Shown one piece after another: positions 14,337 through 61,103 of a stretch of DNA of 64,000 bases (positions within the stretch are counted from its first letter, which is position 1; each line of letters starts with the position of its first letter). The stretch lies in IMG/VR virus record IMGVR_UViG_3300032268_000832, positions 1-64,000 of that record; one strand, given 5' to 3'. The notes under the pieces are model-generated. The model did not search any database and was not told the origin of the DNA. It worked only from the letters and a program-made list of their open reading frames with translations. A program made the translations under genes and the position numbers.

Positions 14337-14666
14337 TTATTTGGTTTTGTTTTTAATGATTAGTTCACCGAGCACTTCGAGTCTACCCACTTCTTTTTGG
14401 AATTGTGTTTGGGACATATCCAGAGATATTTTGTTGTAAGTTTCGTTGTATTCTTTTATGGCTTGTTCTATATCAAACTTTCCGTCTATGGCTTTTTTGT
14501 AATAAGCTGGTTTTACGTTAAAGTGGTTATATGTTAGCATTGCGTCGCCGCCTTTTTCTTTTGCGTTTGCTATTATTTTTTCGGCGCCAGCAAGTCTATT
14601 CTTTGCGAAGTCTTTATCGTCGAATACAAAATTTTCTCTAAGCAGTTGTTTTATGGTATGTTTCAT
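14337..14666 (-). CDS. putative internal head protein (N-terminal MKHTIKQLLRE)
   Basis: Shared N-terminal motif; late promoter at 14688-14699. Confidence 0.8.
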   Translation of the reverse strand: MKHTIKQLLRENFVFDDKDFAKNRLAGAEKIIANAKEKGGDAMLTYNHFNVKPAYYKKAIDGKFDIEQAIKEYNETYNKISLDMSQTQFQKEVGRLEVLGELIIKNKTK

Positions 14667-14714
14667 ATTTTTTAATGTTTTAAATTATATTTATAAATAC
14701 ATAAAAAAAGTAAA

Positions 14715-16301
14715 ATGAATACAAACATACGCAATATACTTAGAGAGGGACTTATTGTAGAGGCTTCAAAGAAAGATATTCTCATTAACAAGATTGGGTG
14801 GGATGAGGAGTCGGCTGATATACTTGATAGACTTTGTGGTCCGTTAAGTGTTTGGATGGGCAACAAGATTATTGAATACAAGGTAGAAGACTATGGGGAA
14901 TTTCCTGATGGTACTTCACCTCAAGACATAAAGAAGGTTATAATGGATACTCTTAACGGTGAAAGATTTGTCAACAGAAATCGTCAACAACTTACATCCA
15001 TCATGGACTGGATTCGTGTTGGTCTTAACGGCAACTTGGGTGAAAATAAAAATTTATCTTTTTGGGATTTATACAAAGCATCTGAGAAATGGCATGATGA
15101 ATTGGAAGTTGGTGCTGGTGATATTAACTATATTGAAGAGAATCCTATTATACTTGACTTTAGAGATGCTAACGGCAATGGATTTTATTGGGCTGATTTG
15201 GAAACATCAAGTTCAAAAGAGGAATGTAATCGTATGGGACATTGTGGTACTAGTAGCGCTGGTAGGATTTATTCTCTTAGACAAGTCACACAATTAAATG
15301 AAAAGTATAAGCTTAACAAGTCTGTGTTGACTGCTGCTATTGGTACCGATGGCATAGTGTATCAGATGAAGGGTGGAAAGAATAGCAAGCCTGAAGAAAA
15401 GTATCATCAGTATATTTATCCGTTGTTATTCTTAAAGAATGGTGATGATTATTTTATCAAGGGGTTTGGTAGTGAATATGATAGTGCTAGTGACTTTAAG
15501 TTGACTGATTTTAGTGATGATGTTATTGGTGAGATATTTGCTAAGCGTCCTGAGTTGTTTAACAAGAGAAGTCTTAAGAAGAAATTATTTGCTTTGGGTC
15601 TTATTCCTGAATTGCCTGAGGAGTATGTTAACATTGAGATTGCTGTTGATAATATTGAAAGATATGTAGACAGTAATTATTCTGATGTTATTAAGAGTGT
15701 GTTGAGTGGTGATGATTATGACTTATGGGATAATTATGATGCTGATTGGAAGAGTGCATTGGAGTATCATGTTAATAATGAGAGTACAGTTGAGATAATA
15801 AATGTATTAAGGGAGATGGCGGCAAAGAATGGTGTTGAATTTGATGATAGTATGAGTCTTGAGGAAATGATTGAGGAGTATGATGAGGACCAAGAGGTTA
15901 TAAACGCGATTCAGTTATCTGTCAACGATGCTGAGCGTGATGATTATATTAGTTACATATACAAACAATTAAAAAGTTCGCTTGAGGAATATGGTGGTGT
16001 TGAGAAGTTGGATGATACTGGTGTTAGCATGCGTGTTGATTTGGGCAAACTGATTGATGAATTGGAGGATGATGTTTATGAAGAGATAGCTGACAATTGT
16101 AATGATGATAGTGATTGTATATTTAATGAGATGGTTTCTGATAGTTGGATTGATAAACCTGATTTTTATTTGGATGATAGATATATTCCTGATGTTAGTG
16201 AGGAATATTTTAATGAGTTGTTACAAGAAAGACTTGGTGAGATAAGTTTAAATGAAAGCAAGGCTTTTATAAAGAATATGCTTAGAGAGAATTTTAAATA
16301 A
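14715..16301 (+). CDS. PcfJ-like domain protein with acidic C-terminus; LRE motif at both termini
   Basis: EECNRMGHCG...IYSLR...QMKGGKN; MNTNIRNILRE and FIKNMLRENFK. Confidence 0.65.
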   Translation: MNTNIRNILREGLIVEASKKDILINKIGWDEESADILDRLCGPLSVWMGNKIIEYKVEDYGEFPDGTSPQDIKKVIMDTLNGERFVNRNRQQLTSIMDWIRVGLNGNLGENKNLSFWDLYKASEKWHDELEVGAGDINYIEENPIILDFRDANGNGFYWADLETSSSKEECNRMGHCGTSSAGRIYSLRQVTQLNEKYKLNKSVLTAAIGTDGIVYQMKGGKNSKPEEKYHQYIYPLLFLKNGDDYFIKGFGSEYDSASDFKLTDFSDDVIGEIFAKRPELFNKRSLKKKLFALGLIPELPEEYVNIEIAVDNIERYVDSNYSDVIKSVLSGDDYDLWDNYDADWKSALEYHVNNESTVEIINVLREMAAKNGVEFDDSMSLEEMIEEYDEDQEVINAIQLSVNDAERDDYISYIYKQLKSSLEEYGGVEKLDDTGVSMRVDLGKLIDELEDDVYEEIADNCNDDSDCIFNEMVSDSWIDKPDFYLDDRYIPDVSEEYFNELLQERLGEISLNESKAFIKNMLRENFK

Positions 16302-16329
16302 AAAAAGGGCCAAATGGCCCTTTATTTTT
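16300..16329. terminator. bidirectional terminator
   Basis: AAAGGGCC-aaat-GGCCCTTT between convergent genes. Confidence 0.8.
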
Positions 16330-17779
16330 ATATGAATAATTTTTTTCTTAGTGATTCTTTTATTTGTTGTTTTTGTATTATTTCTTTGTAGTCTTTTTCC
16401 ACACCTAGAAGGTTTGCTATTTCATCTGGTGAGACATGGTTACCGTGTGATGGGTTACCCATTGATTCGTCAAGTGTTTTAATTTTTCTATTTACGTAAT
16501 CGATAAGATAGTTAACCACGTTAGATACGGTTTCAAATACCTTTACCATATTTTCTTTATTTCCACCCCACATGATTGTATAGTTAAGACTTGTTGTTTT
16601 TACGTCGAATCCGAACGCGTACATAAACATCCATGCTGATAGTTCTGCTTGTTGTTCGATTGTTTGGTGGGTGATACCTCTACCGATAAAGAACTTAGAA
16701 GTTTCGTCACCTTTGCTTGATAGGTATTTTTGGTGAAGTAATTCGTGAGTAATTTCGTGTGCTAGTGTTTTTGTAAGACCTACATCGTTTCCTTCGCTTC
16801 TAAGAAGTTTTATGATACCGCTACCGCTTGAACCTCTTGCGCCATCAAGGTCATCGATAAGTTCTGTTTTGATTCCTTTTTCATCACAGAAGTCCATTAG
16901 TGATTGGTATATTGGTCTAACTTCCTCAGATATAAGATTATCTTCATACCATTTGATATCTTTTCTTGCATCTTTTGCTTTTTCGATATAGTCTTCGGTA
17001 CCTTCAATTTGTTTTGTATCGGATACGTCGTATACTGGTGCGAATTTGAATTTAGATGTTAGTGAGTAGCCTCTAAGTTCTTTATCTAGTCTTATTTTTT
17101 CATTAGGTGTAAGTTCTTCGTATGAATTTTTATTTACTGATTTAATAAAGTTTTGTTTTATTATTTCAGCCTTATCTTTTGATATTTTATTGTTAACACC
17201 TTGTGGTGCCCATACCATTAGGGGTTTAGCATTTTCATTAACGGTTCTGTTGTATTTTTCAAGCCAGTTCTTTTTGCTATTAACGATTGAAGCTTTTGGG
17301 TTTTGGATTAGGATAAGGATTGTATTTCCGAATGTAAATTCATAACCTTGAGCAGCTTTAAAAGCGATTATTTTTCCCATTGTTTCTTTGAATTGTTCAT
17401 CGTTTTCAATGTTAACAAGCATTTCTTTGAAAGACGCCAATTTTTCTTTGATATCTTCTTCCTCTTGTTTGGTTAAGCTAAGGTCTGGGTTTGCTGATGG
17501 TTCATTTTCAGAAATATTTTTAATCATTTCGTCAATATCAAACGGCAAGTTTTGTGCTTGTTTAATTTCTTTAAGAGCTGGTTTGATGAGTTTTTCTATT
17601 GTTTCTTGTTCATTTTTCCCTAAGAACCAGAACCAAAATTTATTTGGGTTGTTCCATTTTGCGTTCTTTGATTTAAGAATTTCTTTATAAGGAAATACGT
17701 CACCAGTTATGTATACTATTGGGTATTCTCCAGTTTGTGTTTTTAACTTTGTTTTAAAAAGTTTGATTTCATTTGCCAT
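16328..17779 (-). CDS. polyvalent protein: DUF5710-like + ArdC-like ssDNA-binding + zincin metallopeptidase (ImmA/MPTase-like)
   Basis: YKEILKSKNAKWNNPNKFW; YEFTFGNTILILIQNPKA...W...RTV...LMVWAP; TLAHEITHELLH...EQQAE. Confidence 0.7.
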   Translation of the reverse strand: MANEIKLFKTKLKTQTGEYPIVYITGDVFPYKEILKSKNAKWNNPNKFWFWFLGKNEQETIEKLIKPALKEIKQAQNLPFDIDEMIKNISENEPSANPDLSLTKQEEEDIKEKLASFKEMLVNIENDEQFKETMGKIIAFKAAQGYEFTFGNTILILIQNPKASIVNSKKNWLEKYNRTVNENAKPLMVWAPQGVNNKISKDKAEIIKQNFIKSVNKNSYEELTPNEKIRLDKELRGYSLTSKFKFAPVYDVSDTKQIEGTEDYIEKAKDARKDIKWYEDNLISEEVRPIYQSLMDFCDEKGIKTELIDDLDGARGSSGSGIIKLLRSEGNDVGLTKTLAHEITHELLHQKYLSSKGDETSKFFIGRGITHQTIEQQAELSAWMFMYAFGFDVKTTSLNYTIMWGGNKENMVKVFETVSNVVNYLIDYVNRKIKTLDESMGNPSHGNHVSPDEIANLLGVEKDYKEIIQKQQIKESLRKKLFI

Positions 17780-17833: not shown

Positions 17834-18436
17834 ATGAAAAATATCATTAAAAAATTGCTTAGAGAACAATTTGTAAGCGAAGAAAGGTATTCAAATGACA
17901 TACGAAAATTCTTAGACCAAGACCCAAAACGCATGACTACTGGTACTGCGTATTACATATCATCTATGGATACTTATATGAATAAGACGATAACGGATAA
18001 ATTTGGCAATAAGGTACCAAATCCAATGTATGGTAAGATATTCAAACATACTAGATTTATATTTGGTTGGAGGGATACGTTTGAGAGAGCTATGAAGCGA
18101 ATTAACCCTAACTATGTTGTTGGGGCTAAGAGTGGTAACTATAAGCCAGTTGATGGTTATGATATGCTTGAGGAAGGTAAGAATGGGTTATATTTCCCAA
18201 TTATTCCAACTGGGACTGAGTATGTGTATGTAATTTGCAATGGCCCATGTAGAGTTGCTGATAAGAATGAAGTTAAACCATTTTTTAAAGAAACCAATAA
18301 GTCTTATTGGTCAGAAGAAGGTAAAGCACCTTTTAGACAGTTGATAGTTGATAGAGCGGTTAAGATAACTGGTGGTGGTCATGAGTGGATAAATGATAAA
18401 TTAAAGTCTAAATGGCTTGGAATTGGAAATGTATAA
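17834..18436 (+). CDS. putative internal head protein (MKNIIKKLLRE)
   Basis: Shared motif; late promoter at 17806. Confidence 0.8.
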   Translation: MKNIIKKLLREQFVSEERYSNDIRKFLDQDPKRMTTGTAYYISSMDTYMNKTITDKFGNKVPNPMYGKIFKHTRFIFGWRDTFERAMKRINPNYVVGAKSGNYKPVDGYDMLEEGKNGLYFPIIPTGTEYVYVICNGPCRVADKNEVKPFFKETNKSYWSEEGKAPFRQLIVDRAVKITGGGHEWINDKLKSKWLGIGNV

Positions 18437-18438
18437 TT

Positions 18439-20619
18439 ATGAATAGTATAATAAAAAAATTACTTAGAGAATCGTTGGTTGTTGAATTTTATGGCAAAAG
18501 GGTTATTGAACCCATAACAAAAAGATTTAACGATTCTTCTGATGATATGATAAACAAATTGGGTATTGCTTTTTTGTTTAGGTCATTCTTCGGCGACATC
18601 ATGCAATATAAAACCAAAGAACAATTTGAGCAAACATTCAACAAATGGTATGATGGAATATTGAAAGAAATGATAAAAACCAAGGATTTTCCAGATAACA
18701 AAGATTTAGCCAAAAAATACTTAGACGCTTATATAAACAACATAGTTTCTATGGGTGACGCAGCAAGACCATTTTCATTTAAAGACTTAGAGAAAACACT
18801 AGTCGATTTGGTTAACAACAATCGTTGGATTTCAGATGAGGAAGTTAGTACTGGTGCTACGATATACAAACCTAATCAAGAGGATATAATGTATGAGGAT
18901 GACGAAGTCCTTATATTAAACACTGATACCAAGGCTAAATGTGTAAGATATGGTATGGGTGAAACTTGGTGTATAACCAAAGCTGATGCTAATTATTATA
19001 ACACGTATAGACTTAGCTATGGTGCCACACCTTATTTTGTGTTGCAAAAGAATGTTAATGGTGATGAGCACAAGTTGGTTATATTGAATTATGGTGGTCG
19101 TGATGCGTATGCTATTGCTGATAGAAGCAACACTGGTGAAAGAAGTGGTGGTCAACGTGACGCAATGTCTTGGTATGATATAGAGCAACAGTTACCTAAT
19201 TTACAAGGGCTTGAAGAATATTTCCCATATAGAGAGATTACTGATGACGAACGTCAGTATTCTGAATTGTTGGATAAGCTTAAAAATAATTTTATTGCTG
19301 ATGACTTACAAGAACTTATAGATAGATATACTGGAAAATTGGTTATAAACGGTTCGCCTATTACCTCTGGTGATTTTATTAGAGATTTAGCAGCAAATAG
19401 AATGGCATTTAACTTAGAGCAATTAAAGAGTCTAAGAAAAGAAACTATGGATAGTCTTATTGAGGCTGGGTATTTTGTGAATTTATATTACGACACAAAA
19501 TTATATGAGGAAGTGTTATCACCATCTCAAATAAATCGTATTATAAAATTAAAGATTGATAGCAACAAGGTACTTGAGGATGTTTTTTATCAATTTATGA
19601 CACCAGATGCTCTTAAAAAGTACATGATGTTAAGAATAAATGGTCACAACAATGGGGCGAATGATAATTGGAATAGTGGTATTAATGAAAGACCATTAGA
19701 CTACGATGAAGTTAACCTAATTAAAAAAATATTACCAGAAGCTAAAATAAATGCAAACAGATATGATTTTTCTAAAGAATATGATGCATTTTTAGGGTTA
19801 GTTGTTGACCCTAGTGTTATTAAAAACCCAGAAGTTAAAGAAAACTTAAATAAATTTTCAAAGTATCAAATACAACTCTTAATAAACACCAACCCTGATT
19901 TAACTAAATACTTAGTTAGGTTAGATAATTTTAAAGAAATACAAGATTGGCAATTGGCTAATATGTTAGAAGTTAACCCAAAACTTTATAAAGTGATACT
20001 TGACTCTTTACCAGAAGAAAGAAAACAAGAATTGTTAGAAAGATTACAATTTACTGAAATATTACCTTTTTTAATTAGGGATAAATATATCACAATAGAC
20101 ACTGAAGAGGAATTTAAAAAACTTAGATTTTCTCTTTTATACGATGGTAAAGGTAAGGCTTTTGTTTATAAACCAGAATTGTTAAGATTTATTACTAGTA
20201 GCTACGATTTAGAAAAATTGTTAATACAACAACCAACATTGTTTAAATACTTAGGTGATAAAATAGACATGCTAGCTGATTATGATTTAAAAGACATTAT
20301 AGTGAAAAACCCAAAAACCTTAAACTATATACCTGAGGAGCGTCTTGACGCTATGGGTGAGTATAGAATATACAGTATGATATATAGTAAACCAATACTT
20401 GCTCGTCAGTTATATCATAAGATTGGAATAAATTATATTATTGATTTGATTAAATCAGTTCCTAAGGTAATTCAATACTTACCAGATTCTGTACTTAGAC
20501 AATTGGATAAATATGATATGGTTAGTATCTTATACAAAAAAGAGTTGTATCCTTATATGGAACCAATTATTGACAAGTACATACCAGATGATAAAGATTA
20601 TATCTTAGATAGAATGTAA
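18439..20619 (+). CDS. putative internal head protein with PcfJ-related WC[IT] domain and C-terminal helical repeats (start corrected)
   Basis: MNSIIKKLLRE; YGMGETWCITK..YYNTY; repeats NPDLTKYL, NPKLYKVI, QPTLFKYL, NPKTLNYI, VPKVIQYL. Confidence 0.7.
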   Translation: MNSIIKKLLRESLVVEFYGKRVIEPITKRFNDSSDDMINKLGIAFLFRSFFGDIMQYKTKEQFEQTFNKWYDGILKEMIKTKDFPDNKDLAKKYLDAYINNIVSMGDAARPFSFKDLEKTLVDLVNNNRWISDEEVSTGATIYKPNQEDIMYEDDEVLILNTDTKAKCVRYGMGETWCITKADANYYNTYRLSYGATPYFVLQKNVNGDEHKLVILNYGGRDAYAIADRSNTGERSGGQRDAMSWYDIEQQLPNLQGLEEYFPYREITDDERQYSELLDKLKNNFIADDLQELIDRYTGKLVINGSPITSGDFIRDLAANRMAFNLEQLKSLRKETMDSLIEAGYFVNLYYDTKLYEEVLSPSQINRIIKLKIDSNKVLEDVFYQFMTPDALKKYMMLRINGHNNGANDNWNSGINERPLDYDEVNLIKKILPEAKINANRYDFSKEYDAFLGLVVDPSVIKNPEVKENLNKFSKYQIQLLINTNPDLTKYLVRLDNFKEIQDWQLANMLEVNPKLYKVILDSLPEERKQELLERLQFTEILPFLIRDKYITIDTEEEFKKLRFSLLYDGKGKAFVYKPELLRFITSSYDLEKLLIQQPTLFKYLGDKIDMLADYDLKDIIVKNPKTLNYIPEERLDAMGEYRIYSMIYSKPILARQLYHKIGINYIIDLIKSVPKVIQYLPDSVLRQLDKYDMVSILYKKELYPYMEPIIDKYIPDDKDYILDRM

Positions 20620-20625
20620 ATAAAT

Positions 20626-20714: not shown

Positions 20715-21950
20715 ATGGGAAGACAAATTAACAAAGAAAAAGTCCTTGAAGAAAAGGGTGAGGTTAAACAATACACGTTATTTCAAGAAAATAGGTCACC
20801 TAAATTAGATTGGTTGTTGGATGTTTATAAGAAAGACCCTTACAAGGCGCGCGTTTTGTATTTTAATAACATTGGGTCTTTTTATTTAGAGCGAAAAGTT
20901 TGTTTTGAAAGGACAGATGGTAGTTTTGAAATTTGCAATTTTAGAAGAACATTTGGCATGACAAAAACCAATAGAATTTATTCTAGAGAAAAGAAAATTA
21001 ATTCGTTGATTTACAAAAACAAAAAGTTTTATTTTAAAAATGGTTCGTCTATTAAACACGCTATGTATGTTGATGTTGCATATCATTTTAATTTTGCCTT
21101 AAATTTTTTACAGACAAAATTTACGTGGATTAGAAATATAAAAGAGAATAAGTATTGTCATAACATTTCATTTTCATCAATTATGACGTATAAATTATTC
21201 AACGCGGATAAAATAATGAAACATTTATATAAGGCACCAACATCTGTAATTAAAACGTTGACCACTGAATATGAACAAAAATCATCTGGCTATGGTTATA
21301 TTTCAAAATTTGAATGGAAAAGAATTAGCCCATATTTAATAAACATTGAAAATTTGAAAACAGAATTTTTTACAAATCATTTGTTTAGGGACACGATTGA
21401 AATGGCGATTAAGTTAGACAAAAAAATTAACTGTTCATGGTCTGATAAAAGACTTAAACATGAACACGATACATGGGCTAAAGAACTACGAAAAATAATG
21501 CTTGAGTTTGAACCAGTGATTGAATTAAACCCTCACAGAATATTTGAAGACTTTGAAAAGTTTACTGGATACAAAATGCTTAGAACCAATCATGATTTGA
21601 TTGAGGAAGGACATAGACAAGACCATTGTGTTGCTGGTTATGGTAGTTCAGTATCAAATGGTTATTGTGGAATTTATCAAGTTAGCGGATACACACTTGA
21701 GGTTAGTTACAGACAAGATTATGGTATTGGTATTAAATCAAACAATCAAAAAACATTACACTATTCTCAGTTAAGAGGTTATAAAAATTGCTCAGCACCT
21801 AAAGAATTAGATGACACTGTTAAATCTTACATTGAAGCATTTAACACTAAATATAATTTTGATGAGTATGAAAAATACTTAAAACAACAAGAAAATACTG
21901 TTCAAGCAGTGTTTAGAGAAATAGAAGAAGTAAATTATCTTCCATTTTAA
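20715..21950 (+). CDS. PcfJ domain-containing protein
   Basis: DLIEEGHRQDHCVAGY...TLEV...QLRGYKN; host-type promoter TAtcTTTG at ~20679-20686. Confidence 0.75.
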   Translation: MGRQINKEKVLEEKGEVKQYTLFQENRSPKLDWLLDVYKKDPYKARVLYFNNIGSFYLERKVCFERTDGSFEICNFRRTFGMTKTNRIYSREKKINSLIYKNKKFYFKNGSSIKHAMYVDVAYHFNFALNFLQTKFTWIRNIKENKYCHNISFSSIMTYKLFNADKIMKHLYKAPTSVIKTLTTEYEQKSSGYGYISKFEWKRISPYLINIENLKTEFFTNHLFRDTIEMAIKLDKKINCSWSDKRLKHEHDTWAKELRKIMLEFEPVIELNPHRIFEDFEKFTGYKMLRTNHDLIEEGHRQDHCVAGYGSSVSNGYCGIYQVSGYTLEVSYRQDYGIGIKSNNQKTLHYSQLRGYKNCSAPKELDDTVKSYIEAFNTKYNFDEYEKYLKQQENTVQAVFREIEEVNYLPF

Positions 21951-21955: not shown

Positions 21956-21984
21956 AAAGGGACCCAATCAGGTCCCTTTTTTTT
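21956..21984. terminator. bidirectional terminator
   Basis: AAAGGGACC-caatca-GGTCCCTTT. Confidence 0.8.
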
Positions 21985-22838
21985 TATGTGTTTTCTTGTA
22001 TTGACATTATTTGGTCGTAAGACTTAGAATTTATATCGTTTAATACTTCCATATATGGTGTACGTCTAAGCACTTTAAACACTAGATTTTCTAGTGAATA
22101 TTCACCACCGCTTTCAAGACCGCTTTTTCTATATTTTTTTATTTTGTCTTTAAGTTCTTGTGACTTATCTAAGGCTCTTTGGTAATCACCTTCAGTGTAT
22201 ATTTTTTTGATATCTTTAAGTTTATCAAAAAAAGATAATGCTTTCTTTTTTATTATATTTCTATTTATCTTAAGTTTTTCTTTTTCAGGTTTAAGGAGCC
22301 ATTTATTTCTTTTGACAGAATATACCGCGTTAGCAGAAAGAGTTTCTCTAATGTCTTGTAAATACAATTCTACGTCATATCCTTTGATAGTTATATCATG
22401 ATTCTTATTCCAAAGGTTTTTATAAGAGTCAAATAATTGTTTTATAAATTCTTCTTTGGTATCGATTGTTTCAAAATCAACAATTACATGTAAATCAACG
22501 TCAGAGTATTTTGACCAATTGTAGTTGGCAAGACTACCAGTGAATATAACATCTTTAATCACAAGTTTTTCTGGGCTTTTTAATCCATCAAAAAATTCTT
22601 GTGCTATAAGCATAAGCTGGTCGCTGATATCTTTTCTTAATTCTTCTTTATCCCAGAATTCTGGGTTAAGTGAAGGTTTCAATTGAAAACTATCTAGAAC
22701 TTCTTTTGGGATTTTTAAATCTTTGGTGATAGTATCTCCCAATGCGTTTGCAGCCTCTTCCAATTCATCAAGTTTTTCTGATGCTGGGGTAAGGTTATAG
22801 TTTTCTATTATGATATTTTTTTTGAAAAATAATTTCAT
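21984..22838 (-). CDS. Pol beta-superfamily nucleotidyltransferase
   Basis: GSLANYNWSKYSDVDLHV (GS...DxD) and third acid in YDVELY. Confidence 0.8.
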   Translation of the reverse strand: MKLFFKKNIIIENYNLTPASEKLDELEEAANALGDTITKDLKIPKEVLDSFQLKPSLNPEFWDKEELRKDISDQLMLIAQEFFDGLKSPEKLVIKDVIFTGSLANYNWSKYSDVDLHVIVDFETIDTKEEFIKQLFDSYKNLWNKNHDITIKGYDVELYLQDIRETLSANAVYSVKRNKWLLKPEKEKLKINRNIIKKKALSFFDKLKDIKKIYTEGDYQRALDKSQELKDKIKKYRKSGLESGGEYSLENLVFKVLRRTPYMEVLNDINSKSYDQIMSIQENT

Positions 22839-27087: not shown

Positions 27088-27109
27088 GTTTTATAAAATA
27101 TTTATAAGT

Positions 27110-27451
27110 ATGAAAACAAAATTAATAATTACGGAATCGCAATTTAATAAAGTTAAATCTATTTTGGCTGAAAACACTATGCACGCTAGAATGGTAAAAG
27201 AAATGAAAGACTTTTTAAATGCAAACTACACCCCAACTGAAAATTATGTTCGCGAGGGTGGTGAGTATTTTGGTAAAACAATGTTTAAAGTTAACGCTGA
27301 TGAAGAGTTAATCTCAGCTAAACAACTTTATGAATACATGCTTTATAAATACGGTCTTAGTGAATCATTCACCCAACAAGTTATAAAAGATTGGGTTTCT
27401 GGTAAAATTAGTGAGGATAATATGTTATCTAAACATGTACCTATGCGATAG
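27110..27451 (+). CDS. putative internal head protein (MKTKLIITESQ; start corrected)
   Basis: Late promoter at 27098; I-x-E and L-x-E sites near the N-terminus. Confidence 0.75.
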   Translation: MKTKLIITESQFNKVKSILAENTMHARMVKEMKDFLNANYTPTENYVREGGEYFGKTMFKVNADEELISAKQLYEYMLYKYGLSESFTQQVIKDWVSGKISEDNMLSKHVPMR

Positions 27452-27453: not shown

Positions 27454-27777
27454 ATGGACCTCAAACCTAAAATACGAAAAATATTAAGAGAACACTACGG
27501 TGAATTTGAAACGTATCTAGAACACAAATACGAAGAAGTTTTGACTGAAAATTTAATCACTGGTTCAACAATAGTAAAAGAAGCTTGGGCAACTTACAAT
27601 CAAGTAGTTTTAGAATTAAAAAACAGTATAAAAAATACTTTAAAATTAAAAGAACTACAATATAAATTAACCGATAACTCAAACCCAAAAGACATGTGTA
27701 TAGAAGTTATTTCTGATATAAAAGACATGTCTCCAGAGCTAAAAAGACTCTATGAAAAGATAAAAAATCTGTATTGA
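27454..27777 (+). CDS. putative internal head protein (KIRKILRE)
   Basis: Shared motif; paralogue of the next gene (LKELQYKLTDNSNP). Confidence 0.75.
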   Translation: MDLKPKIRKILREHYGEFETYLEHKYEEVLTENLITGSTIVKEAWATYNQVVLELKNSIKNTLKLKELQYKLTDNSNPKDMCIEVISDIKDMSPELKRLYEKIKNLY

Positions 27778-31968: not shown

Positions 31969-32250
31969 GTTTTCTCTAATAAGTTTTTTAATTAATTTTT
32001 TTTGAGATTCTTTTAAATCTTTTTCCGCGTCTTTTTCCATTTTTTCAAGCCTGTCATAATAATCAGGGAATTCTGTAATGTGGTCCATAGCAATTTCTTT
32101 TGCTTTTTCTTTATCGTCGGTATGCTCCGATTCAATTTTAACCCCTTTTTTTAATTGTGCTTGTATTTTTTCAACAGATACATCGAATTTGTCGGCAATG
32201 TTTTGTAGTGACATGTTATCTGATTTACCGCCTTTAATTGTATTTTTCAT
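31957..32250 (-). CDS. hypothetical protein with C-terminal LIKKLIRE motif (start corrected)
   Basis: KGVKIESEHT...AKEIAMDHITEFPDYYDRL. Confidence 0.75.
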   Translation of the reverse strand: MKNTIKGGKSDNMSLQNIADKFDVSVEKIQAQLKKGVKIESEHTDDKEKAKEIAMDHITEFPDYYDRLEKMEKDAEKDLKESQKKLIKKLIRENLGF

Positions 32251-32252
32251 AA

Positions 32253-33020: not shown

Positions 33021-33037
33021 ACATATAAATATAAAAA

Positions 33038-51621: not shown

Positions 51622-52404
51622 ATGCAAAATTTTGGAAAAATAAAAAACGCTTTTAGTGAAATAATTGCAGAAGGGATAGTTTCAAACGATGAATCTAAAA
51701 AGATACTCTTCAAAAAATATATAAAAACACTTAGAGAAAACAAAGCGTTAAAAACACAATTTTTGGTTTACGAAAATATCGAAAATAAAATTGAATCTAA
51801 TAGAGAAAAAGCTACAGAATTTGTTAAAGAAAATATAGCTTTATTAAACCAATTTTCAAAAAAAGAATTACAAGAAGCTAATTTAAAGTTAGCTAAACCA
51901 ATTTTATTTGAAGATAGTTCTGTGATTTCTAATGATACTGAAAAGTTACATGAGGATATTTCTAAATTAATTTTTACCGAAAGAAGTCCTAAGAATATTG
52001 ATACTATAATTGAAGCTATTTCAGATATTGTTGATTACATTCTTGCAAATAAAGAAAAAGTGGTAACAGAATCTTATGGTGTTCCAAATAGTATGTTAAG
52101 TTCTATTCTTGTTGAAAAATATAATGAGAAATATAGTGAATCAATAACTGAAACTGAAAAAGAAGTTATTACTGTTTTAATTGAATCTACTGATGAAGAG
52201 AAAATAGAAGTGTATTCAAAAATATCTAGAGAATGTATTGATTTAATTGATAATAAATTAACAGAATCGGATTTAGAAACAAAAGACAAATTGTTACGTG
52301 TTAAAGATAAATTATTAAGAGACAAAGTGGAGTTAAATGAAGATTTTTCTAAAAACATATCTAAATTAGTTAGTTTAAAATTAACTTTAAATAACGATAA
52401 CTAA
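51622..52404 (+). CDS. helical head-assembly region protein (start corrected)
   Basis: Late promoter at 51598; charged helical protein. Confidence 0.8.
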   Translation: MQNFGKIKNAFSEIIAEGIVSNDESKKILFKKYIKTLRENKALKTQFLVYENIENKIESNREKATEFVKENIALLNQFSKKELQEANLKLAKPILFEDSSVISNDTEKLHEDISKLIFTERSPKNIDTIIEAISDIVDYILANKEKVVTESYGVPNSMLSSILVEKYNEKYSESITETEKEVITVLIESTDEEKIEVYSKISRECIDLIDNKLTESDLETKDKLLRVKDKLLRDKVELNEDFSKNISKLVSLKLTLNNDN

Positions 52405-53562: not shown

Positions 53563-54288
53563 ATGGATATAAATTATAAAAATTTTAAGATATTAAAAAG
53601 AGGTGAAACTGGTTGGGGTGGCCTTATAGAGCATGACGCTGGTTATATATCACCTGATGAACCTAGAAACCAACCTTTCATAAACGAAATAAAAAAATTA
53701 GATACTGGAAATAAATTAGCCATTGTTGAACCTTTGATTGTTTATGTAGTGCTTCAAAAATACGGAATCCTAAACCGTAACGGTAGAGTATACCCAGAAG
53801 CTATTCTAAAATCACAAGACAAATTATACCAACAAGCCATAAAAGAGCGTAGAGCTGTAGGTGAATTAGACCACCCAGAATCTTCTATTATCGCTGGCGA
53901 TAGAATTTCACACAATATTATTGAAACTTGGTGGGAAGGTCATACACTTATGGGTAAGATGGAAATCTTAATGACACCAGGTTTTATAAACTACGGTATT
54001 GTATCAACCAAAGGTGATGAAGTAGCAAATTTATTAAGAAACAGAATTAAAATTGGTGTTTCTTCTAGAGGTGTAGGTTCATTAAAAGAAGGTAAAAACG
54101 GTGAACAAATTGTGCAAGACGATTTTGAAATAATTTGTTGGGATGTGGTTACAGCTCCATCAACACCAGATGCATGGATTGGTCGTAGTGCTGAAGAAAT
54201 GAGACCTTATGTTGAAAACGTAGAAGTTAAAAAACCAATTATAAAAGAAAATTTTAACGATAACTTAGATAAATTTTTATTAGAATAA
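53563..54288 (+). CDS. gp21: prohead core protease (T4 gp21-like)
   Basis: NRNGRVYP, GELDHP, SH.I, GVSSRGVGS, WDVVTAPSTPDA. Confidence 0.93.
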   Translation: MDINYKNFKILKRGETGWGGLIEHDAGYISPDEPRNQPFINEIKKLDTGNKLAIVEPLIVYVVLQKYGILNRNGRVYPEAILKSQDKLYQQAIKERRAVGELDHPESSIIAGDRISHNIIETWWEGHTLMGKMEILMTPGFINYGIVSTKGDEVANLLRNRIKIGVSSRGVGSLKEGKNGEQIVQDDFEIICWDVVTAPSTPDAWIGRSAEEMRPYVENVEVKKPIIKENFNDNLDKFLLE

Positions 54289-55680: not shown

Positions 55681-57510
55681 ATGTCACATTTATTGACTTC
55701 AGGACAAGTTGGTAACATCGGATTAAACCACATGAAGGCTATCCGTTTGGAAACACAACAAAAATGGGATTCTTTAGGGTTCTTAGACGGACTTAAAGGC
55801 CATGTAAAAGAAAATATCGCTCAGTTATATGAAAACCAAGCTTCTAGCTTGTTAACTGAAGCTACTACAGCTAATTCATCAGGTTCTTTCGAAACTGTTG
55901 TATTCCCAATTGTAAGAAGAGTTTTCTCTAAATTATTAGCTAATGACGTTGTATCTGTACAAGCTATGAACATGCCAATCGGTAAATTGTTCTTCTTTGT
56001 GCCGTTAACTTCAGAGCGTGTAAACGCTTCTGGTCAAGGTGGTGACCCATATGTTGACGGTGCTCAATATTCTGCTCACACTTCATTTGCAAATTACGGT
56101 TTACCTTCATGTGTTCAAACAACTGATGGTTGCGCTGTAACTCAGTGGATGGGTAAAAACTTATACGATTTATTCTACAATGATGGTTTGTTTGATAACT
56201 CTAAAGGTACGCTTACTATTAACACTGTATCTAATTTAAAAGTATATACATTATTAACTGGTGGTACTTTCTCAATAGTAACTGGTGGTTCAACTGTATT
56301 ACCAATCGCTGCTGATGGTTCAGTTAGAAACGTAATTGTTGCTCTTTCTGGTTTCTCAGCTGGTGCTGGTACTAATGGTAGAGAAGTATTGACAGGTCCT
56401 GATGGAAACGCTATGGATACTGAATCATTCTTAGCTTCATTAAAAGTTGTTGCTCCTGCTACATTATTAGATAGAGATGGTAACGCTGTTATCGGTATTG
56501 GTCAAGAAGTTCCTTTTAGACTTGTTACTCAAAGATATGGTGTTGGTATCGTAACTGGTCCAAACGTTGTTACCGATGGTAACGGTGTATGTTGGTTAGA
56601 ATTAGATTTAACTCACCCAGTTGGAACAACTGCTGTTGCTGGTGCTGCTGCTGCTGGTACAGCTACTTACGATGGTTATGTTGGTGCTTCTGCAACTACA
56701 TTTAGTTCATTCTCTGCTTTTACAGCTGCTTACGCTACTTATGCTAGTTTAGAGTTCGAAACAGAAATGGGTGAAGTATCATTCAGACTTGATGAAGTTG
56801 TTGTTTCTGTAGAAGAAAGAAAATTAAGAGCTACATGGTCTCCAGAGTTAGCGCAAGACGTTAGTGCATTCCACAACATCGACGCTGAAGCTGAATTAAC
56901 TGCAATGCTTTCTGAGCAAGTTGCTGCTGAAATTGACCGTGAAATCCTTAGAGATTTACGTAAAGCTGCTGCATGGCAATTACGTTGGGATTACAATGGA
57001 TGGAGAAAAGCTTCTTCTGCTGCGAGCCCATATACTCAAAAAGAGTGGAACCAAACTTTAATTACTAAATTAAACCAAATTTCAGCTCAAATCCATAAAT
57101 CTACACTTAGAGGTGGTGCTAACTTCATCGTTGTATCTTCAGAGATTTCTGCAATCTTCGACGATTTAGAATACTTCCACGTGTCAGACGCTAACCCAGA
57201 GCAAGACCAATACAACATGGGTATTGAGAGAATCGGTTCATTAGGTGGTAGATATCAAGTATATCGTGACCCATATGCACCAGCATACTCAATCATCATC
57301 GGTCACAAAGGGAAATCATTATTGGATACTGGATACATCTACGCTCCGTATGTGCCATTACAGTTGACTCCAACAATGTATAACCCATTCAACTTCGCTC
57401 CAGTGAAAGGTATCATGACTCGTTACGCTAAAAAAGTGGTTAACAACAGATTCTACGGACACTTGAGAGTTGACGGTGTACAAACATTCAACATCAACGA
57501 ATTAAGATAA
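55681..57510 (+). CDS. gp23: major capsid protein (T4 gp23-like)
   Basis: PIVRRVF..LLANDVVSVQAM; RKLRATWSPELAQDV.AFHNIDAEAEL; YAPYVPL; GIMTRY. Confidence 0.96.
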   Translation: MSHLLTSGQVGNIGLNHMKAIRLETQQKWDSLGFLDGLKGHVKENIAQLYENQASSLLTEATTANSSGSFETVVFPIVRRVFSKLLANDVVSVQAMNMPIGKLFFFVPLTSERVNASGQGGDPYVDGAQYSAHTSFANYGLPSCVQTTDGCAVTQWMGKNLYDLFYNDGLFDNSKGTLTINTVSNLKVYTLLTGGTFSIVTGGSTVLPIAADGSVRNVIVALSGFSAGAGTNGREVLTGPDGNAMDTESFLASLKVVAPATLLDRDGNAVIGIGQEVPFRLVTQRYGVGIVTGPNVVTDGNGVCWLELDLTHPVGTTAVAGAAAAGTATYDGYVGASATTFSSFSAFTAAYATYASLEFETEMGEVSFRLDEVVVSVEERKLRATWSPELAQDVSAFHNIDAEAELTAMLSEQVAAEIDREILRDLRKAAAWQLRWDYNGWRKASSAASPYTQKEWNQTLITKLNQISAQIHKSTLRGGANFIVVSSEISAIFDDLEYFHVSDANPEQDQYNMGIERIGSLGGRYQVYRDPYAPAYSIIIGHKGKSLLDTGYIYAPYVPLQLTPTMYNPFNFAPVKGIMTRYAKKVVNNRFYGHLRVDGVQTFNINELR

Positions 57511-57531
57511 TCATAATCTTATATAAATTTA

Positions 57532-57561
57532 AAAAAGGCTACCATTACGGTGGCCTTTTTT
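57532..57561. terminator. terminator after major capsid gene
   Basis: AAAAAGGCTACC/GGTGGCCTTTT. Confidence 0.8.
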
Positions 57562-57564
57562 ATT

Positions 57565-57672: not shown

Positions 57673-57727
57673 ATTTTTTTTTTACAAAGATACTAATTTT
57701 TTTATTAATTTGCAAATATTTATAAGT

Positions 57728-58489
57728 ATGAAAAAATTAATAAAAAAGTTAATTAGAGAAAGTTTAGAAGACATCGCTGGTTTTACAAACATAACACCAG
57801 AGGAACGCAAAGAAATCGATAGAAGATATAAAGAGTTTGTTTTATCTGATACTGAAAGCGCTGTTAAAGCTAAAAAACAACTTGACCATTACAATAAGGT
57901 AATAAGCGACCCAAAATTTGCCAACCAAGAATGGATTCCAAAAGCTTTTAAAGACCAAATTAGTGCATTACAAAATACAATTAATGCTGCTAAAAATAGA
58001 GATAGAAAAGCTGTGTATCATGAAATAGCTAGAAATTATTTATCATGGAAAAGATATGAAGATGATATAGTTAAAGCTAGAGAGTCTAGAACCTTTGGTA
58101 AAGAAGACATTATAAACCTATTTGTAGACGCTTTAGAAGGAGGTTCTAACTATTGGTATGAGATACGTCATTTACCTAACGAAGTTCGCTATAAAGCCAA
58201 GGAAATGGGTCAATCAGTATCTGAAGCTATAGGTGAGTATATTCTTAAAGGTGGTTATGTTCAATTTTATGATGCTGAAGAAGAATATGACGAAGATGAT
58301 TATACTGAAACACATTCAGATAATGGATTGTTGGGTACAGTAGATATGGATTCAATTCTAGAAGCAATAACAATAATAAAAAGAGATTACCCAGATGTTT
58401 GGGAAAATATACTTGATGAGCAATACGATGCAAACGATGCTGATATATTTTTACAATTATGCGTTATGGGTGATGTAGTATTTGGTTAA
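57728..58489 (+). CDS. putative internal head protein (MKKLIKKLIRE; start corrected)
   Basis: Late promoter at 57716; C-terminal ALEGGSNYW...DADIFLQLCVMGDVVFG domain. Confidence 0.8.
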   Translation: MKKLIKKLIRESLEDIAGFTNITPEERKEIDRRYKEFVLSDTESAVKAKKQLDHYNKVISDPKFANQEWIPKAFKDQISALQNTINAAKNRDRKAVYHEIARNYLSWKRYEDDIVKARESRTFGKEDIINLFVDALEGGSNYWYEIRHLPNEVRYKAKEMGQSVSEAIGEYILKGGYVQFYDAEEEYDEDDYTETHSDNGLLGTVDMDSILEAITIIKRDYPDVWENILDEQYDANDADIFLQLCVMGDVVFG

Positions 58490-58490
58490 T

Positions 58491-59135
58491 ATGAAAAAAA
58501 TATTTTTAATAATAACATTGTTCATGACAATGAACGTGTTTTCACAAACAGTTACAACAGATAATAAACTAATAATACCTCACGGGGACATTACGTTGTA
58601 TTTAACGAAAGATACATGTGCTTTGTTATCTAAACATGTTTTAAAGTATTCGAGCTTTCTAAAGCTTGATAAAGAGCGTGATAATCGTTGGTTTCAAGAT
58701 ACGTATAAGGGTAGATATTATAAAGACGCATATTTGAAAACTGGATATGATATTGGTCATCTAACACCGTCGCACATTACATCTTATGATAACGAATTAA
58801 ACCATATGTCTTTTAGCTTGTTCAATGCAGCGCCACAGTTGGCTGGATTTAACAGAGGTAAATGGGCCCAGATGGAAGGAGATGTTGAACGCATAATATC
58901 TGATAACAAACAAGATGTTGTTATTATTACTGGTGTTATATACGACCCAAACAACATAAGGTTTATGGGTAAATCTAGAATTCCTATACCATCAGCATTT
59001 TTTAAGGTTTTATTCATGAACGGTAAAACACAATGTTGGGTTGGTTCAAATATTAATGGTTTGATAGTGACTATTACTTTAAAGGATTTAAACGAATTAT
59101 TCAAAAAGAACAAAATGAATTTAACAATACAATAA
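58491..59135 (+). CDS. secreted DNA/RNA non-specific endonuclease (NucA/Serratia type)
   Basis: Signal MKKIFLIITLFMTMNVFS; YDIGHL, PQ..GFNRGKW..ME, IP..FFKV. Confidence 0.85.
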   Translation: MKKIFLIITLFMTMNVFSQTVTTDNKLIIPHGDITLYLTKDTCALLSKHVLKYSSFLKLDKERDNRWFQDTYKGRYYKDAYLKTGYDIGHLTPSHITSYDNELNHMSFSLFNAAPQLAGFNRGKWAQMEGDVERIISDNKQDVVIITGVIYDPNNIRFMGKSRIPIPSAFFKVLFMNGKTQCWVGSNINGLIVTITLKDLNELFKKNKMNLTIQ

Positions 59136-59657
59136 ATGAAAAATTTGATTAAACAATTACTTCGAGAAAATCTTTTAAGCGAGGTTAGTGATGATATTTA
59201 TGAAATAATTAGAACCCAATACCCTAATGCTAGAATTATGATGGAAGCTAGAGGTTCTGTTGATGGTGATAAGATAATATATAAACCTAAACAACAACCT
59301 GATAAACCTATGGCTAAACCTTTTGGATTATGGTATTCTATAGGTACTGAATGGATTGATTGGGTAAGAATGGAAATGCCACAATGGGAACGTGACCACG
59401 CATTTCTTTTGGATATTGATGATAGTAGATTATTAAAAATTAATACTTATGAAGATTTAAAATTATTTAATGAAGAATATGTTATTGATAATTATTATGT
59501 TGATTGGAAAAGAGTTAGTGAAAAATATGGTGGTATAGAAATAGTACCATATATTTATGAAGCTAGATATGAAATGCTTTGGTATTATACGTGGGATGTA
59601 GCTTCTGGTTGTATATGGGCACCTAATATGCTTAAAAAATCAAAATTAATACAATAA
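59136..59657 (+). CDS. putative internal head protein (MKNLIKQLLRE), possibly ADP-ribosyltransferase-like
   Basis: Shared motif; KPFGLWYS...DW..V...Y.GI...WDVASGCIW. Confidence 0.6.
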   Translation: MKNLIKQLLRENLLSEVSDDIYEIIRTQYPNARIMMEARGSVDGDKIIYKPKQQPDKPMAKPFGLWYSIGTEWIDWVRMEMPQWERDHAFLLDIDDSRLLKINTYEDLKLFNEEYVIDNYYVDWKRVSEKYGGIEIVPYIYEARYEMLWYYTWDVASGCIWAPNMLKKSKLIQ

Positions 59658-59680: not shown

Positions 59681-59681
59681 A

Positions 59682-60725
59682 TATATACGTTAACTCGATT
59701 AATTATTTATTATGCTTTTGTACCGCAACTAGCACAGAACTTGTGTCCTTTACCTAATTTGGCACCACAGTTTGTGCAATATCTTTTTACATTGATATCT
59801 TCAACTGTGTTAACTTTTTGAGATACTGGAAGCAACTTAGCTTCAATAGTATAAAAAGCAAAATATTCAAAATCTTTATTTACTGTTTTGAATTTTTGGT
59901 CAGAATCAGAACCTTCTTCAACTCTACCAGTTTCAATTGATTTAGATTTCTTAGCAACCCCTTTAGTTAGATTTAAAGGTGTTTCAACACTTTTTTCAGT
60001 TTGCATCCAATCCATCGTTGCTGAACCGTCATGTACGCTTGAACTATAAAACGCGCTAGTTGATAAATTACTACTACCTCCAATGATTGTGTTAGTGGTT
60101 GTGAAGGTGTTAGTTATTGGTGTAGTTGAACCATAAACGTAACCACCAGTGTTAGTGTTATCGTAACGGATAATACCTTGGTCGTAGTTTTGTCCACCCC
60201 AGATATCTCTAGTACCACCAATTCTTAATATTGGGTTTCTTGGTCTAGGTTTTGACTCTCTGTAAAATTGAACCTTGAAATCACCATTATTTACTATTGC
60301 TTCTTTCACTTCTTGAGTGTTAGCTACTTCGTATGTGTCGAATAAGAATTTTTTGGCAACGTCTAAGTATCTATCTAAGAATACACGTTGACCTGGGCTC
60401 AATACAAGACCACCCTGTGAGATAACATTTCCGTTAAGTGTAATTTTAGCAAGTACAGATTCCGTAGTTGGATTGAAAAGTTCAATCTGGAACTCTTGCC
60501 CTTTTTGTAAATAATAAGTTGGCAAATCACCTTCTTTTTTGTAAAGTTTAACTCTACTTTTGTTCACAGCAATGTTTGCTGTTGGCATTTTTGGTGCCAC
60601 ATAGTTTAATTGTTTCATTTTTAATTAACTTTTAATTTTTGTTATTATTGTACCAATTTCTTTATTGCCTAGACAACTCTAAAGCCTATTAAGACTCGAA
60701 ACCAATACGTGAGTTAACGTATATA
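59682..60725. repeat. 15 bp perfect inverted repeat flanking one gene
   Basis: TATATACGTTAACTC (59682-59696) / GAGTTAACGTATATA (60711-60725). Confidence 0.85.
59710..60618 (-). CDS. conserved protein with C-terminal zinc ribbon
   Basis: YCTNCGAKL.KGHKFCASCG; beta-rich N-terminal domain. Confidence 0.85.
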   Translation of the reverse strand: MKQLNYVAPKMPTANIAVNKSRVKLYKKEGDLPTYYLQKGQEFQIELFNPTTESVLAKITLNGNVISQGGLVLSPGQRVFLDRYLDVAKKFLFDTYEVANTQEVKEAIVNNGDFKVQFYRESKPRPRNPILRIGGTRDIWGGQNYDQGIIRYDNTNTGGYVYGSTTPITNTFTTTNTIIGGSSNLSTSAFYSSSVHDGSATMDWMQTEKSVETPLNLTKGVAKKSKSIETGRVEEGSDSDQKFKTVNKDFEYFAFYTIEAKLLPVSQKVNTVEDINVKRYCTNCGAKLGKGHKFCASCGTKA

Positions 60726-60764
60726 ATATAAATATAATAATTTTTTTTTTATTTGTCAATACTT

Positions 60765-61103
60765 TTATTGAAAATCTGAACCCATTTCACATAATGTTGA
60801 TTGGATTTGGTGCCAATAAGTATCAGCTTCATCTGGCATTGAATCCCCAGACATACCATATTGTTTTATTTCACCATCAATTTCAATTTGTTCGTTTTTT
60901 AAATTTTTCAAAGGCGCGTAAATTCTTTTCATTACTTTTGTCTTTGTCGCTTCATCCATATCTTTTGTGGCAGCTTTTACATATCTAATTGCTTCGGTGT
61001 ATGAACCTATAGTCATTTTATTACATAGTGATTCCATCGCTGAATTCATTTCTTGACCATCAATAAGTTCCTCTCTTAGTAATTTTTTTATAAATTTTTT
61101 CAT
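60765..61103 (-). CDS. putative internal head protein (MKKFIKKLLRE)
   Basis: Shared motif; coupled to the upstream structural gene. Confidence 0.8.
   Translation of the reverse strand: MKKFIKKLLREELIDGQEMNSAMESLCNKMTIGSYTEAIRYVKAATKDMDEATKTKVMKRIYAPLKNLKNEQIEIDGEIKQYGMSGDSMPDEADTYWHQIQSTLCEMGSDFQ

Follow-up and report, generated by a model that had tools for sequence, protein, structure and literature searches.

A reused N-terminal peptide as a candidate prohead-loading leader in a T4-like jumbo phage

About 20 otherwise unrelated proteins of one T4-like jumbo phage genome (306,463 bp, 31% G+C; IMG/VR record IMGVR_UViG_3300032268_000832) carry a short peptide of the type MKxxIKKLLRE, where x is any residue. 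We examined this peptide, here called the tag, in the first 64 kb of the genome, a stretch of 64,000 nucleotides termed the window, whose first letter is position 1 of all coordinates given, as well as in the rest of the genome and in related phages. From its sequence context we judge, with a probability of roughly 65%, that the tag is a protease-cleaved leader resembling the capsid-targeting sequence (CTS) of phage T4 and loads proteins into the prohead. Docking, cleavage, packaging and ejection of the tagged proteins, or cargo, are the steps we infer. Additional copies of the tag lie within proteins or at their C-termini, where they appear to mark the joints between protein modules.

A peptide shared by unrelated proteins

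Within the window, the pattern h-K-x-L-L-R-E (h, hydrophobic residue) is present at the N-terminus of eight proteins, at the C-terminus of two and internally in one, a copy being counted as N-terminal when Met lies 4-6 residues ahead of Ile. A preliminary description of this DNA had listed eight N-terminal copies, all of which were found, and its internal and C-terminal copies are likewise borne out in the genes at 14715-16301, 31957-32286 (minus strand) and 32253-33047 (minus strand). The genome-wide motif check proposed there, carried out with a regular expression and a position-specific scoring matrix, extends the 11 copies of the window to 21 for the whole genome (18 N-terminal, two C-terminal and one internal). 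The loose regular expression gave 19 matches, all in extended tag context, compared with 5.3 in random contexts for shuffled genomes, and the matrix added two N-terminal variants, MKDFIKNRLRE at 237266 and MKDFIKQKLSE at 213046. Beyond these 21, a degenerate internal copy, LNEVKNTLREGLITE, is found in a 642-aa protein (201709-203637).

The strict DNA pattern for M-K-x-x-I-K-K/Q-L-L-R-E occurs only 34 times in 596 Gb of prokaryote genomes, and about 31 of these matches are plainly unrelated or due to chance. The other three are contigs of this phage clade binned into metagenome-assembled genomes labelled Methanobacterium, Gammaproteobacteria and Flavobacteriaceae (L225, L241 and L235), which likely reflects binning contamination. 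By inspection of the tag peptides, eight tags in this 0.3-Mb genome fit the same strict pattern, and at least 118 stretches fit it in IMG/VR. The prokaryote-genome null and the shuffled genomes reject a chance or low-complexity artefact, and the observation is confirmed as real and far above chance. A paralogous family is also rejected, since nothing is alike beyond the leader: after removal of the first 16 residues, the tagged proteins show no mutual BLASTP similarity at E<=0.01. A literature search for the tag peptide strings found no paper that contains them.

Among the matches listed there are 103 distinct tags, in which Ile5, Leu8, Leu9 and the Arg before Glu are near-invariant and Glu11 is invariant, although the search pattern itself forced positions 1-2 and 5-11. 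The unforced positions 4 (78 of 103), 13 and 14 are also hydrophobic, and a second h-x-E occurs at residues 14-16 in 35 of these tags. Copies of the tag differ in how Ile, Lys, the first Leu, Arg and Glu are encoded, and distant relatives keep the peptide with other codons, so that selection is on the peptide. A purely nucleotide-level element is therefore rejected, both because codons vary and because leaders of different type replace one another, as described below.

The tag is highly portable. At least 108 distinct tagged open reading frames (ORFs) from IMG/VR, together with 20 from this genome, form 56 BLASTP clusters among the matches listed, the clusters comprising 120 tagged proteins. 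Among orthologues, some bear the canonical tag, some one of two other leader types and some lack a leader; every leader type ends in hydrophobic-hydrophobic-x-Glu (hh-x-E). The type-2 leader, M[RK]KFDKIKNIKKANLLxE/QRYL (a slash sets off what follows Glu), is present in this genome on the unrelated proteins at 116558, 117232, 206203 and 207161, and the type-3 leader, MKxKLIITE[ST]Q..h..hLxE, on those at 27110, 115486 and 120037. Both types also occur in relatives, and both can replace the canonical tag. Conversely, three proteins of this genome with non-canonical N-termini (21984-22838, 28314-29708 and 207161) have canonically tagged orthologues elsewhere.

Two families next to the capsid gene illustrate this interchange. 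Members of the 59136-59657 family bear the canonical tag, other hh-x-E leaders or none, the leader forms converge on h-x-E/VSDD, and leaderless homologues are present in actinobacteriophages. The 57728-58489 family exists in many phages as a bare EGGSNYW domain of 116-149 aa, to which the version in this clade adds a leader and a helical hairpin. At the same post-capsid locus, phages with 74-80% capsid identity have either the canonical tag or MRRFDKDKNIQKANLLAE/QRYL, and other 57728-58489 homologues carry MKIIITESQ...hLxE. Even phages whose capsid proteins are 100% identical differ in the cargo encoded beside the capsid gene. In the predicted proteome, hh-x-E is 4-fold more frequent than background where it ends at residues 9-13 and 2.5-fold where it ends at residues 14-18, suggesting roughly 30-35 leader-bearing proteins.

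The preliminary description had also listed four I-x-E variants of the tag, which fared differently. The variant at 22838 (minus strand) gains support from an orthologue (L153) with a canonical tag, and the one at 27110 belongs to the conserved type-3 leaders, MKxKLIITESQ...hLxE. The variant at 30582 resembles that type by eye only, and the one at 6004 has no support apart from its promoter.

Head genes, module joints and promoters

The window encodes a head module in T4 order, comprising terminase, portal, four small genes, protease, an acidic scaffold-like protein and capsid (Table 1). The gp21-like protease noted in the preliminary description is upheld by its PHROG and PDB matches, and its His (in D-H-P) and Ser (in S-S-R-G) align with those of T4 gp21. 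Its C-terminus carries the tag-like string VKKPIIKE/N (54226-54252), and the 260-aa protein encoded between portal and protease contains FSEIIAE/G at residues 11-17 and KKYIKTLRE/N at residues 31-39 (51712-51738). The tag-like strings of both proteins are conserved in relatives. C-terminal processing is known for T4 gp21 and Alt (PMC9026906).

In the capsid protein, residues 57-60 form an L-[LI]-x-E motif (here L-L-T-E, 55849-55860) that does not vary among more than 55 relatives; 8 variable residues come next, and then a core that aligns with mature gp23*. This L-L-T-E is likely the maturation cut. With an invariant hh-x-E just ahead of the gp23*-like core, cutting after hh-x-E, the motif in which the leaders also end, is very likely for the protease of this clade.

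In AF2 models of two tagged proteins, built from natural alignments, the tag is a helix of its own with low confidence (residues 2-13 and 2-14), set off by a break from a confident fold. For the protein at 57728-58489, the helix at residues 2-14 and the break precede a helical hairpin (residues 24-120) and the EGGSNYW domain.

Internal and C-terminal copies mark module joints: in four independent cases, two modules that are fused in one phage and split in another part exactly at a tag. One such pair is 14715-16301 and 17834-18436, whose homologues in L117 form a single 737-aa ORF that continues through the tag. Here an opposite-strand gene (16328-17779) separates the two and a tag copy remains on each side; in L149 there is apparently also a gene between them, a gap deduced from coordinates. 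In L100, L133, L150 and L183, the counterpart of 31957-32286 does not stop behind this tag but extends into other domains. Many IMG/VR contigs encode the C-terminal module of 32253-33047 (about 133 aa) separately, as an N-terminally tagged protein with its own ATATTTAT promoter box; the fusion recurs in L207, L161 and L097, and apparently also in L202, whose locus ends at residue 175. Finally, the 642-aa protein at 201709-203637 is represented in other contigs by two genes, of 408 aa and about 250 aa, each with a tag of its own. Equivalence of fused and split forms would require a joint that is cut, or at least a free linker, which supports a processing site. Several internal copies are preceded by h-x-E (LNE/SK..., LNE/VK...), so that the tag could be excised on both sides.

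In all, 55 predicted genes have ATATTTAT upstream, at a distance of either 13-18 nt or exactly 4 nt. Among them are terminase, protease, the 260-aa core gene and several large genes of 1000-1300 codons, structural genes included, which makes this box the probable late promoter. The preliminary description had placed this sequence ahead of all eight N-terminally tagged genes or their operons; an exact ATATTTAT is present upstream or at the operon head for seven of them, while the gene starting at 14666 (minus strand) has GTATTTAT, with one mismatch. A second class of box, TAnnTTTG, is likewise found before 55 genes, the small ones at 0.7-8 kb among them, and, given what promoters of Bacteroidota look like, we take it to be host-type. 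In both classes a distance of exactly 4 nt to the ATG stands out sharply (for example 57716-57723 and 27098-27105), which points to leaderless or nearly leaderless mRNAs. No Shine-Dalgarno sequences were seen upstream of tagged genes.

Coverage of the capsid gene by river and lake metatranscriptome contigs is deep; within the region 57456-57562 these contigs stop at 57512-57513, just short of a strong hairpin terminator at 57530-57562. Past this terminator, gene 57728 restarts from its own ATATTTAT. No contigs were found on 57.6-59.7 kb, and they are weak on 59.7-61.15 kb, including the tagged gene at 60765-61103, a distribution that does not decide whether the tagged genes are expressed.

The tagged proteins and their phage

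Pfam and PHROG searches with the window cargo returned almost nothing, and a PDB sequence search with four large cargo proteins gave no matches. For the 726-aa protein at 18439-20619, Pfam, PHROG and PDB sequence searches were all without match. Atlas provides leads only, to PcfJ for 14715-16301 and to repeat proteins for 18439-20619. A fold search with the 57728 model returned only generic helical hairpins and one uncharacterised AFDB cluster. Among the top 50 VIA matches to the 59136-59657 model, nearly all are RES toxins, ParT, PARPs and diphtheria-type or related ADP-ribosyltransferases (ARTs), with Z<=4.9; PARP rows of AFDB appear at E ~0.04, and Foldseek against PDB gave nothing below E=1. 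An ART-superfamily fold is thus a lead for this protein, and the label 'ART-like' that the preliminary description had given to some of the cargo stands as a fold lead for 59136-59657 only.

Two other labels used there hold less well. 'PcfJ-like' belongs by Pfam match to the protein at 20715-21950 (PF14284, 2.9e-8), which is without a canonical tag, and is an Atlas lead only for 14715-16301. 'Peptidase' depends on a weak PHROG match to a metalloprotease (E 0.0085). A match to PHROG 10691 is to a profile 3925 positions long. Further cargo of this genome includes a zinc-ribbon mini-protein and the DUF5661 protein.

More definite identities come from outside the window. A CCA-adding/poly(A) polymerase family enzyme (PolyA_pol, 2e-37; 203675-204847, L084) is tagged, and so is a protein combining a P-loop kinase with a 2H/CPD phosphoesterase (L087). 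Relatives of the CCA enzyme with 73-100% identity keep the tag, and those with 63% and 39% identity start at the equivalent of Met15, so that the tag is a 14-residue add-on and the old start codon is retained. The gene has a host-type TAnnTTTG box 4 nt before Met1. The enzyme may be made in tagged and untagged isoforms. Tagged cargo of relatives includes ART-PolyVal (1.7e-12, L131), NUDIX (1.8e-14, L102) and GNAT (L176) proteins. Mature cargo spans isoelectric points of 4.3-9.3, mostly below 7, and sizes of 5-84 kDa.

Table 1. Head genes, tag-bearing genes and associated elements of the window
Feature	Position	Strand	Remarks
Tag MKHTIKQLLRE	14634-14666	-	ORF 14337-14666 (109 aa)
528-aa cargo	14715-16301	+	N-terminal tag MNTNIRNILRE, 14715-14747
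C-terminal tag copy SKAFIKNMLRE	16257-16289	+	in 14715-16301; then NFK-stop
200-aa cargo	17834-18436	+	tag MKNIIKKLLRE, 17834-17866; ATATTTAT 20 nt upstream
726-aa cargo	18439-20619	+	tag MNSIIKKLLRE, 18439-18471; in operon behind 17834
284-aa nucleotidyltransferase-like protein	21984-22838	-	variant leader MKLFFKKNIIIE, 22803-22838
113-aa protein	27110-27451	+	type-3 leader MKTKLIITESQFNKVKSILAE, 27110-27172
107-aa cargo	27454-27777	+	13-aa tag MDLKPKIRKILRE, 27454-27492; behind 27110
DUF5661 protein	31957-32286	-	ends in tag QKKLIKKLIRE (31972-32004) and NLGF-stop
Two-module protein	32253-33047	-	internal tag FKPIIKALLRE (32625-32657) at domain junction
Terminase	47680-49455		gene order as in T4
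gp20-type portal	49505-51577	+	phrog_213, 2e-59
Conserved 260-aa protein	51622-52404	+	between portal and protease (place of T4 gp67/68)
gp21-type prohead protease	53563-54288	+	phrog_207, 7.6e-39; PDB 5JBL (T4 gp21), 1e-15
Acidic scaffold-like protein, 412 aa	54409-55647	+	12 [IL]xE sites; no family match
gp23-type major capsid protein	55681-57510	+	phrog_138, 3.6e-66; matches mature T4 gp23*
ATATTTAT of 57728	57716-57723	+	4 nt ahead of ATG
253-aa cargo	57728-58489	+	tag MKKLIKKLIRE, 57728-57760; directly after capsid gene and terminator
173-aa cargo	59136-59657	+	tag MKNLIKQLLRE, 59136-59168; second site L-S-E, residues 14-16
112-aa cargo	60765-61103	-	tag MKKFIKKLLRE, 61071-61103; downstream of 61103-62509, which has ATATTTAT

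Several neighbouring genes accompany those of Table 1. The nucleotidyltransferase-like protein at 21984-22838 (Pfam NTP_transf_2, 1.3e-4) has ATATTTAT 17 nt upstream, and the same region encodes the PcfJ-like protein at 20715-21950 and a leucine-rich-repeat protein at 28314-29708. An 833-aa ClpA/ClpB-type double AAA+ protein (33069-35570, minus strand; AAA_2 1.7e-68, Clp_N, ClpB_D2-small) heads the operon that contains the tag-bearing genes 32253-33047 and 31957-32286. Between the two tagged genes that follow the capsid gene lies an untagged gene for a DNA/RNA non-specific endonuclease with a signal-peptide-like N-terminus (58491-59135, plus strand; Endonuclease_NS, 8e-29).

Near-identical sequence is present in lake-water metagenomes, and at least 600 contigs of IMG/VR encode a capsid protein 57-100% identical to this one. 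A megablast search of GenBank phages gave no close relative; by capsid, the nearest deposited phages, at 39-44% identity, are an uncultured 484-kb phage, a Microcystis phage and Flavobacterium phage vB_FspM_immuto. The TAnnTTTG boxes, the lack of visible Shine-Dalgarno sequences and the nearest cultured relative together suggest a Bacteroidota host. Cultured immuto (L216, NC_055915.1, 110-160 kb) has related leaders, MRLLELLRE/A on gp082 and MKKSQLRQIIKE/A on the protein at 113188-113946. The cargo at 14337-14666 is 67% identical to this gp082, which is annotated as TiaS, probably wrongly. A 360-aa protein of immuto, encoded next to its protease, contains ...HFIAE/A.

A proposed loading leader and its alternatives

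In the mechanism that we propose, the leader M-K-x-h-I-K-K/Q-L-L-R-E, often followed by x-L-h-x-E, would form an amphipathic helix ending in a gp21-type site (hh-x-E). Late in infection, this helix would dock cargo onto the assembling prohead core. Once the shell is closed, the prohead protease would cut after Glu and free the mature cargo inside the head, which it would then leave together with the DNA. A tag between two domains would serve as a cleavable joint, such that fused and split genes yield identical mature products, and a C-terminal copy would be the upstream half of such a joint. By means of the canonical and at least two interchangeable leader types, the clade may load a fast-changing set of about 20-30 proteins, among them RNA-repair and nucleotide enzymes and ART-type modifiers. 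A portable CTS-like address tag had already been put forward in the preliminary description, and the T4-type head module, the capsid hh-x-E, the late-promoter context, the portability of the leader and its predicted detachment as a helix are all consistent with that idea. The earlier reading missed the use of the tag as a joint and the existence of at least two other leader types.

The known T4 leader is the closest point of comparison. Its sequence, MKTYQEFIAE, is enough by itself to bring proteins into the prohead core (PMC9026906, PMC8442874), with residues 4 and 7 directing targeting and residues 8 and 10 directing processing by gp21 (PMC9026906). Both are short N-terminal leaders on unrelated proteins with hydrophobic residues at i, i+3 and i+4 and then x-Glu, the tag pattern being the T4 pattern shifted by one residue. 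In both cases the gp21-type protease gene is near scaffold and capsid genes and the cargo set varies between related phages. However, the tag is one residue longer, strongly basic and has a near-invariant Arg before Glu; there are about 20 cargo proteins per genome rather than three or four, they are mostly acidic enzymes of up to 84 kDa, and the tag is also found internally and at C-termini. By sequence the tag is not a T4 CTS, but it most likely works like one.

Several observations weigh against this reading. The leader shares a pattern but no sequence homology with MKTYQEFIAE, and strings closer to the latter are found only in the core protein at 51622-52404 (FSEIIAE) and in immuto (HFIAE). 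The Arg before Glu is not needed for known gp21 cleavage, and this constraint is unexplained by the leader model; the near-invariant Arg and Lys exceed known gp21 specificity and point to a binding partner. Where the internal proteins of T4 are small and basic, most cargo here is acidic or neutral, with sizes of up to 84 kDa. Host-type TAnnTTTG promoters precede both the CCA gene and the kinase/phosphoesterase gene, and the former keeps its Met15 start; these two RNA enzymes may therefore act mainly in the cytoplasm, and both may occur with and without the tag. A C-terminal copy would remain on the mature protein, unlike in T4. For scaffold, protease and tag residues 1-40, a complex prediction returned a score of 0.00, a value that in this tool means no answer, and it was not used as evidence. 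Lastly, the Leu directly before Arg-Glu is encoded by CTT in 12 of 19 copies compared with 16% usage in the genome. This bias fades in distant relatives, and to us it suggests that tags recently spread or underwent gene conversion within this lineage, a secondary process at the DNA level.

Some of the evidence would be accommodated by a tag that is a processing signal only, marking protease cuts at module borders in the manner of a polyprotein without directing proteins into the head, with cargo that is cytoplasmic or enters the virion by other means. Such a signal would account for fused and split pairs that break at tags, for the hh-x-E common to tag and capsid maturation site, and for enzymes whose host-type promoters would suit the cytoplasm. 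However, T4-type prohead proteases work inside the closed prohead (PMC9026906), which implies that a substrate is already in the core, and conservation extends 8-9 residues upstream of the cut (positions 4, 5 and 8), beyond the needs of a gp21-type site and at exactly those positions that direct targeting in T4. We therefore regard processing alone as improbable. The same low standing is given to a helix that docks cargo on a hub other than the capsid, be it the ClpB-like unfoldase of the phage itself, a multi-enzyme complex, the membrane or a cavity of tail or baseplate. The strict Glu and the hh-x-E shared with capsid and core proteins would then go unexplained, as would the interchange with other hh-x-E leaders and the late-promoter and capsid-adjacent context, even though two tag-bearing genes share an operon with the ClpA/B-type gene at its head (33069-35570, minus strand), cleavage does not account for the near-invariant Arg and Lys, and the cargo is not basic.

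Explanations at the nucleic acid level fit less well. If the conserved 33 bp were a homology patch for moving cassettes, with the peptide as by-product, then the CTT bias at one Leu codon, the module swaps, the insertion of the opposite-strand gene 16328-17779 exactly at tags and the varied cargo beside identical capsid genes would all be expected. The other codons differ freely, though, the bias is gone in relatives in which the peptide stays, leader types of unrelated DNA replace one another, and frame and N-terminal register are always kept, all of which makes a recombination joint very unlikely as the function of the tag; recombination is probably a secondary benefit. Least credible of all is an A-rich 5′ coding sequence that aids initiation on late mRNAs that lack Shine-Dalgarno sequences or are leaderless. 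Promoter boxes only 4 nt from ATG in many tagged genes, which imply leaderless transcripts, and the Shine-Dalgarno result given above would agree with such a role, but conservation is at the amino-acid rather than the nucleotide level, internal and C-terminal copies are conserved as protein in relatives, and highly expressed late genes such as capsid and portal are without the peptide.

The prohead-loading leader also has points of contact with other delivery systems. T4 Alt is a packaged ADP-ribosyltransferase whose N- and C-terminal propeptides are cleaved by gp21 (PMC9026906). It resembles the present system as an enzyme cargo with a short leader, cleaved in Alt and proposed to be so here, and offers a precedent for C-terminal processing, and an ART-fold lead is encoded here beside the capsid gene (59136-59657), with ART-PolyVal cargo in relatives. 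However, the assignment in this genome depends on weak fold matches (Z<=4.9), and by sequence the protein is unrelated to Alt. Injection with DNA has also been proposed for the polyvalent proteins of phages and conjugative elements (Iyer et al. 2017, PMC5512222). Their domain vocabulary is similar (ART-PolyVal, 2H phosphoesterase, NUDIX, GNAT and metallopeptidase-like domains), modules are fused or split between genomes, and delivery with DNA is the proposed role in both. Polyvalent proteins are giant polypeptides of 2-15 domains anchored to MuF or portal domains, whereas here most are small separate genes with their own leader or leader-joined pairs, and no conserved processing peptidase domain is fused to the modules. 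Only two-module fusions were seen (32253-33047, 201709-203637, L117, L100, L133, L150 and L183), and most cargo is single-module. Pfam scans of the tagged proteins, rather than a dedicated search, revealed no MuF, portal or relaxase domains.

Giant phages related to phiKZ, including SPN3US and phiKZ itself, have propeptides on head and ejection proteins (PMC5694885, PMC7411985, PMC10052503). As is proposed here, their gp21-related protease cuts many proteins of the head interior behind a Glu in a short motif, and the ejected load is large, but the propeptides are long instead of one portable peptide, the short motif is reported to be a different one and the head is of a different lineage. The cargo-loading peptides of encapsulins are also short and portable and address diverse enzymes to the inside of an HK97-fold shell. 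These are usually C-terminal and uncleaved and bind the shell protein itself, and their cargo is not injected, whereas the tag is mostly N-terminal, its cleavage is proposed and its cargo is proposed to be injected. What is new is a different and very widely reused peptide, leader types that are interchangeable, and joint use together with large enzymatic cargo that includes RNA-repair enzymes.

A more far-reaching version of the loading model can be offered only tentatively, and we are inclined to doubt it more than to accept it. The leader could be a universal cleavable plug of about 11-16 aa that combines capsid address, protease site and joint, such that any gene acquiring it, or joined downstream of it, becomes an injected effector. 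The clade would thereby pre-load RNA-repair enzymes, namely the CCA-adding enzyme and a polynucleotide kinase/2H phosphoesterase, and ART, NUDIX and GNAT modifiers against anticodon-nuclease and nucleotide-signalling defences of the host before phage expression begins.

If the tag is a prohead-loading leader, the injected proteome of a large clade of uncultured freshwater jumbo phages, represented by the 600 or more IMG/VR contigs noted above, would be readable from sequence alone, and the tagged proteins would form a catalogue of dozens of candidate effectors acting in the first minute of infection. The CTS principle would extend to a different sequence, to larger enzymatic cargo and to use as a joint in polyproteins, and this last use would tie the internal proteins of T4 to the polyvalent protein concept. 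Packaged tRNA-repair enzymes would represent a new route of counter-defence. The tag would also be a ready-made loading handle for phages of Bacteroidota, for which cultured vB_FspM_immuto is a possible test bed.

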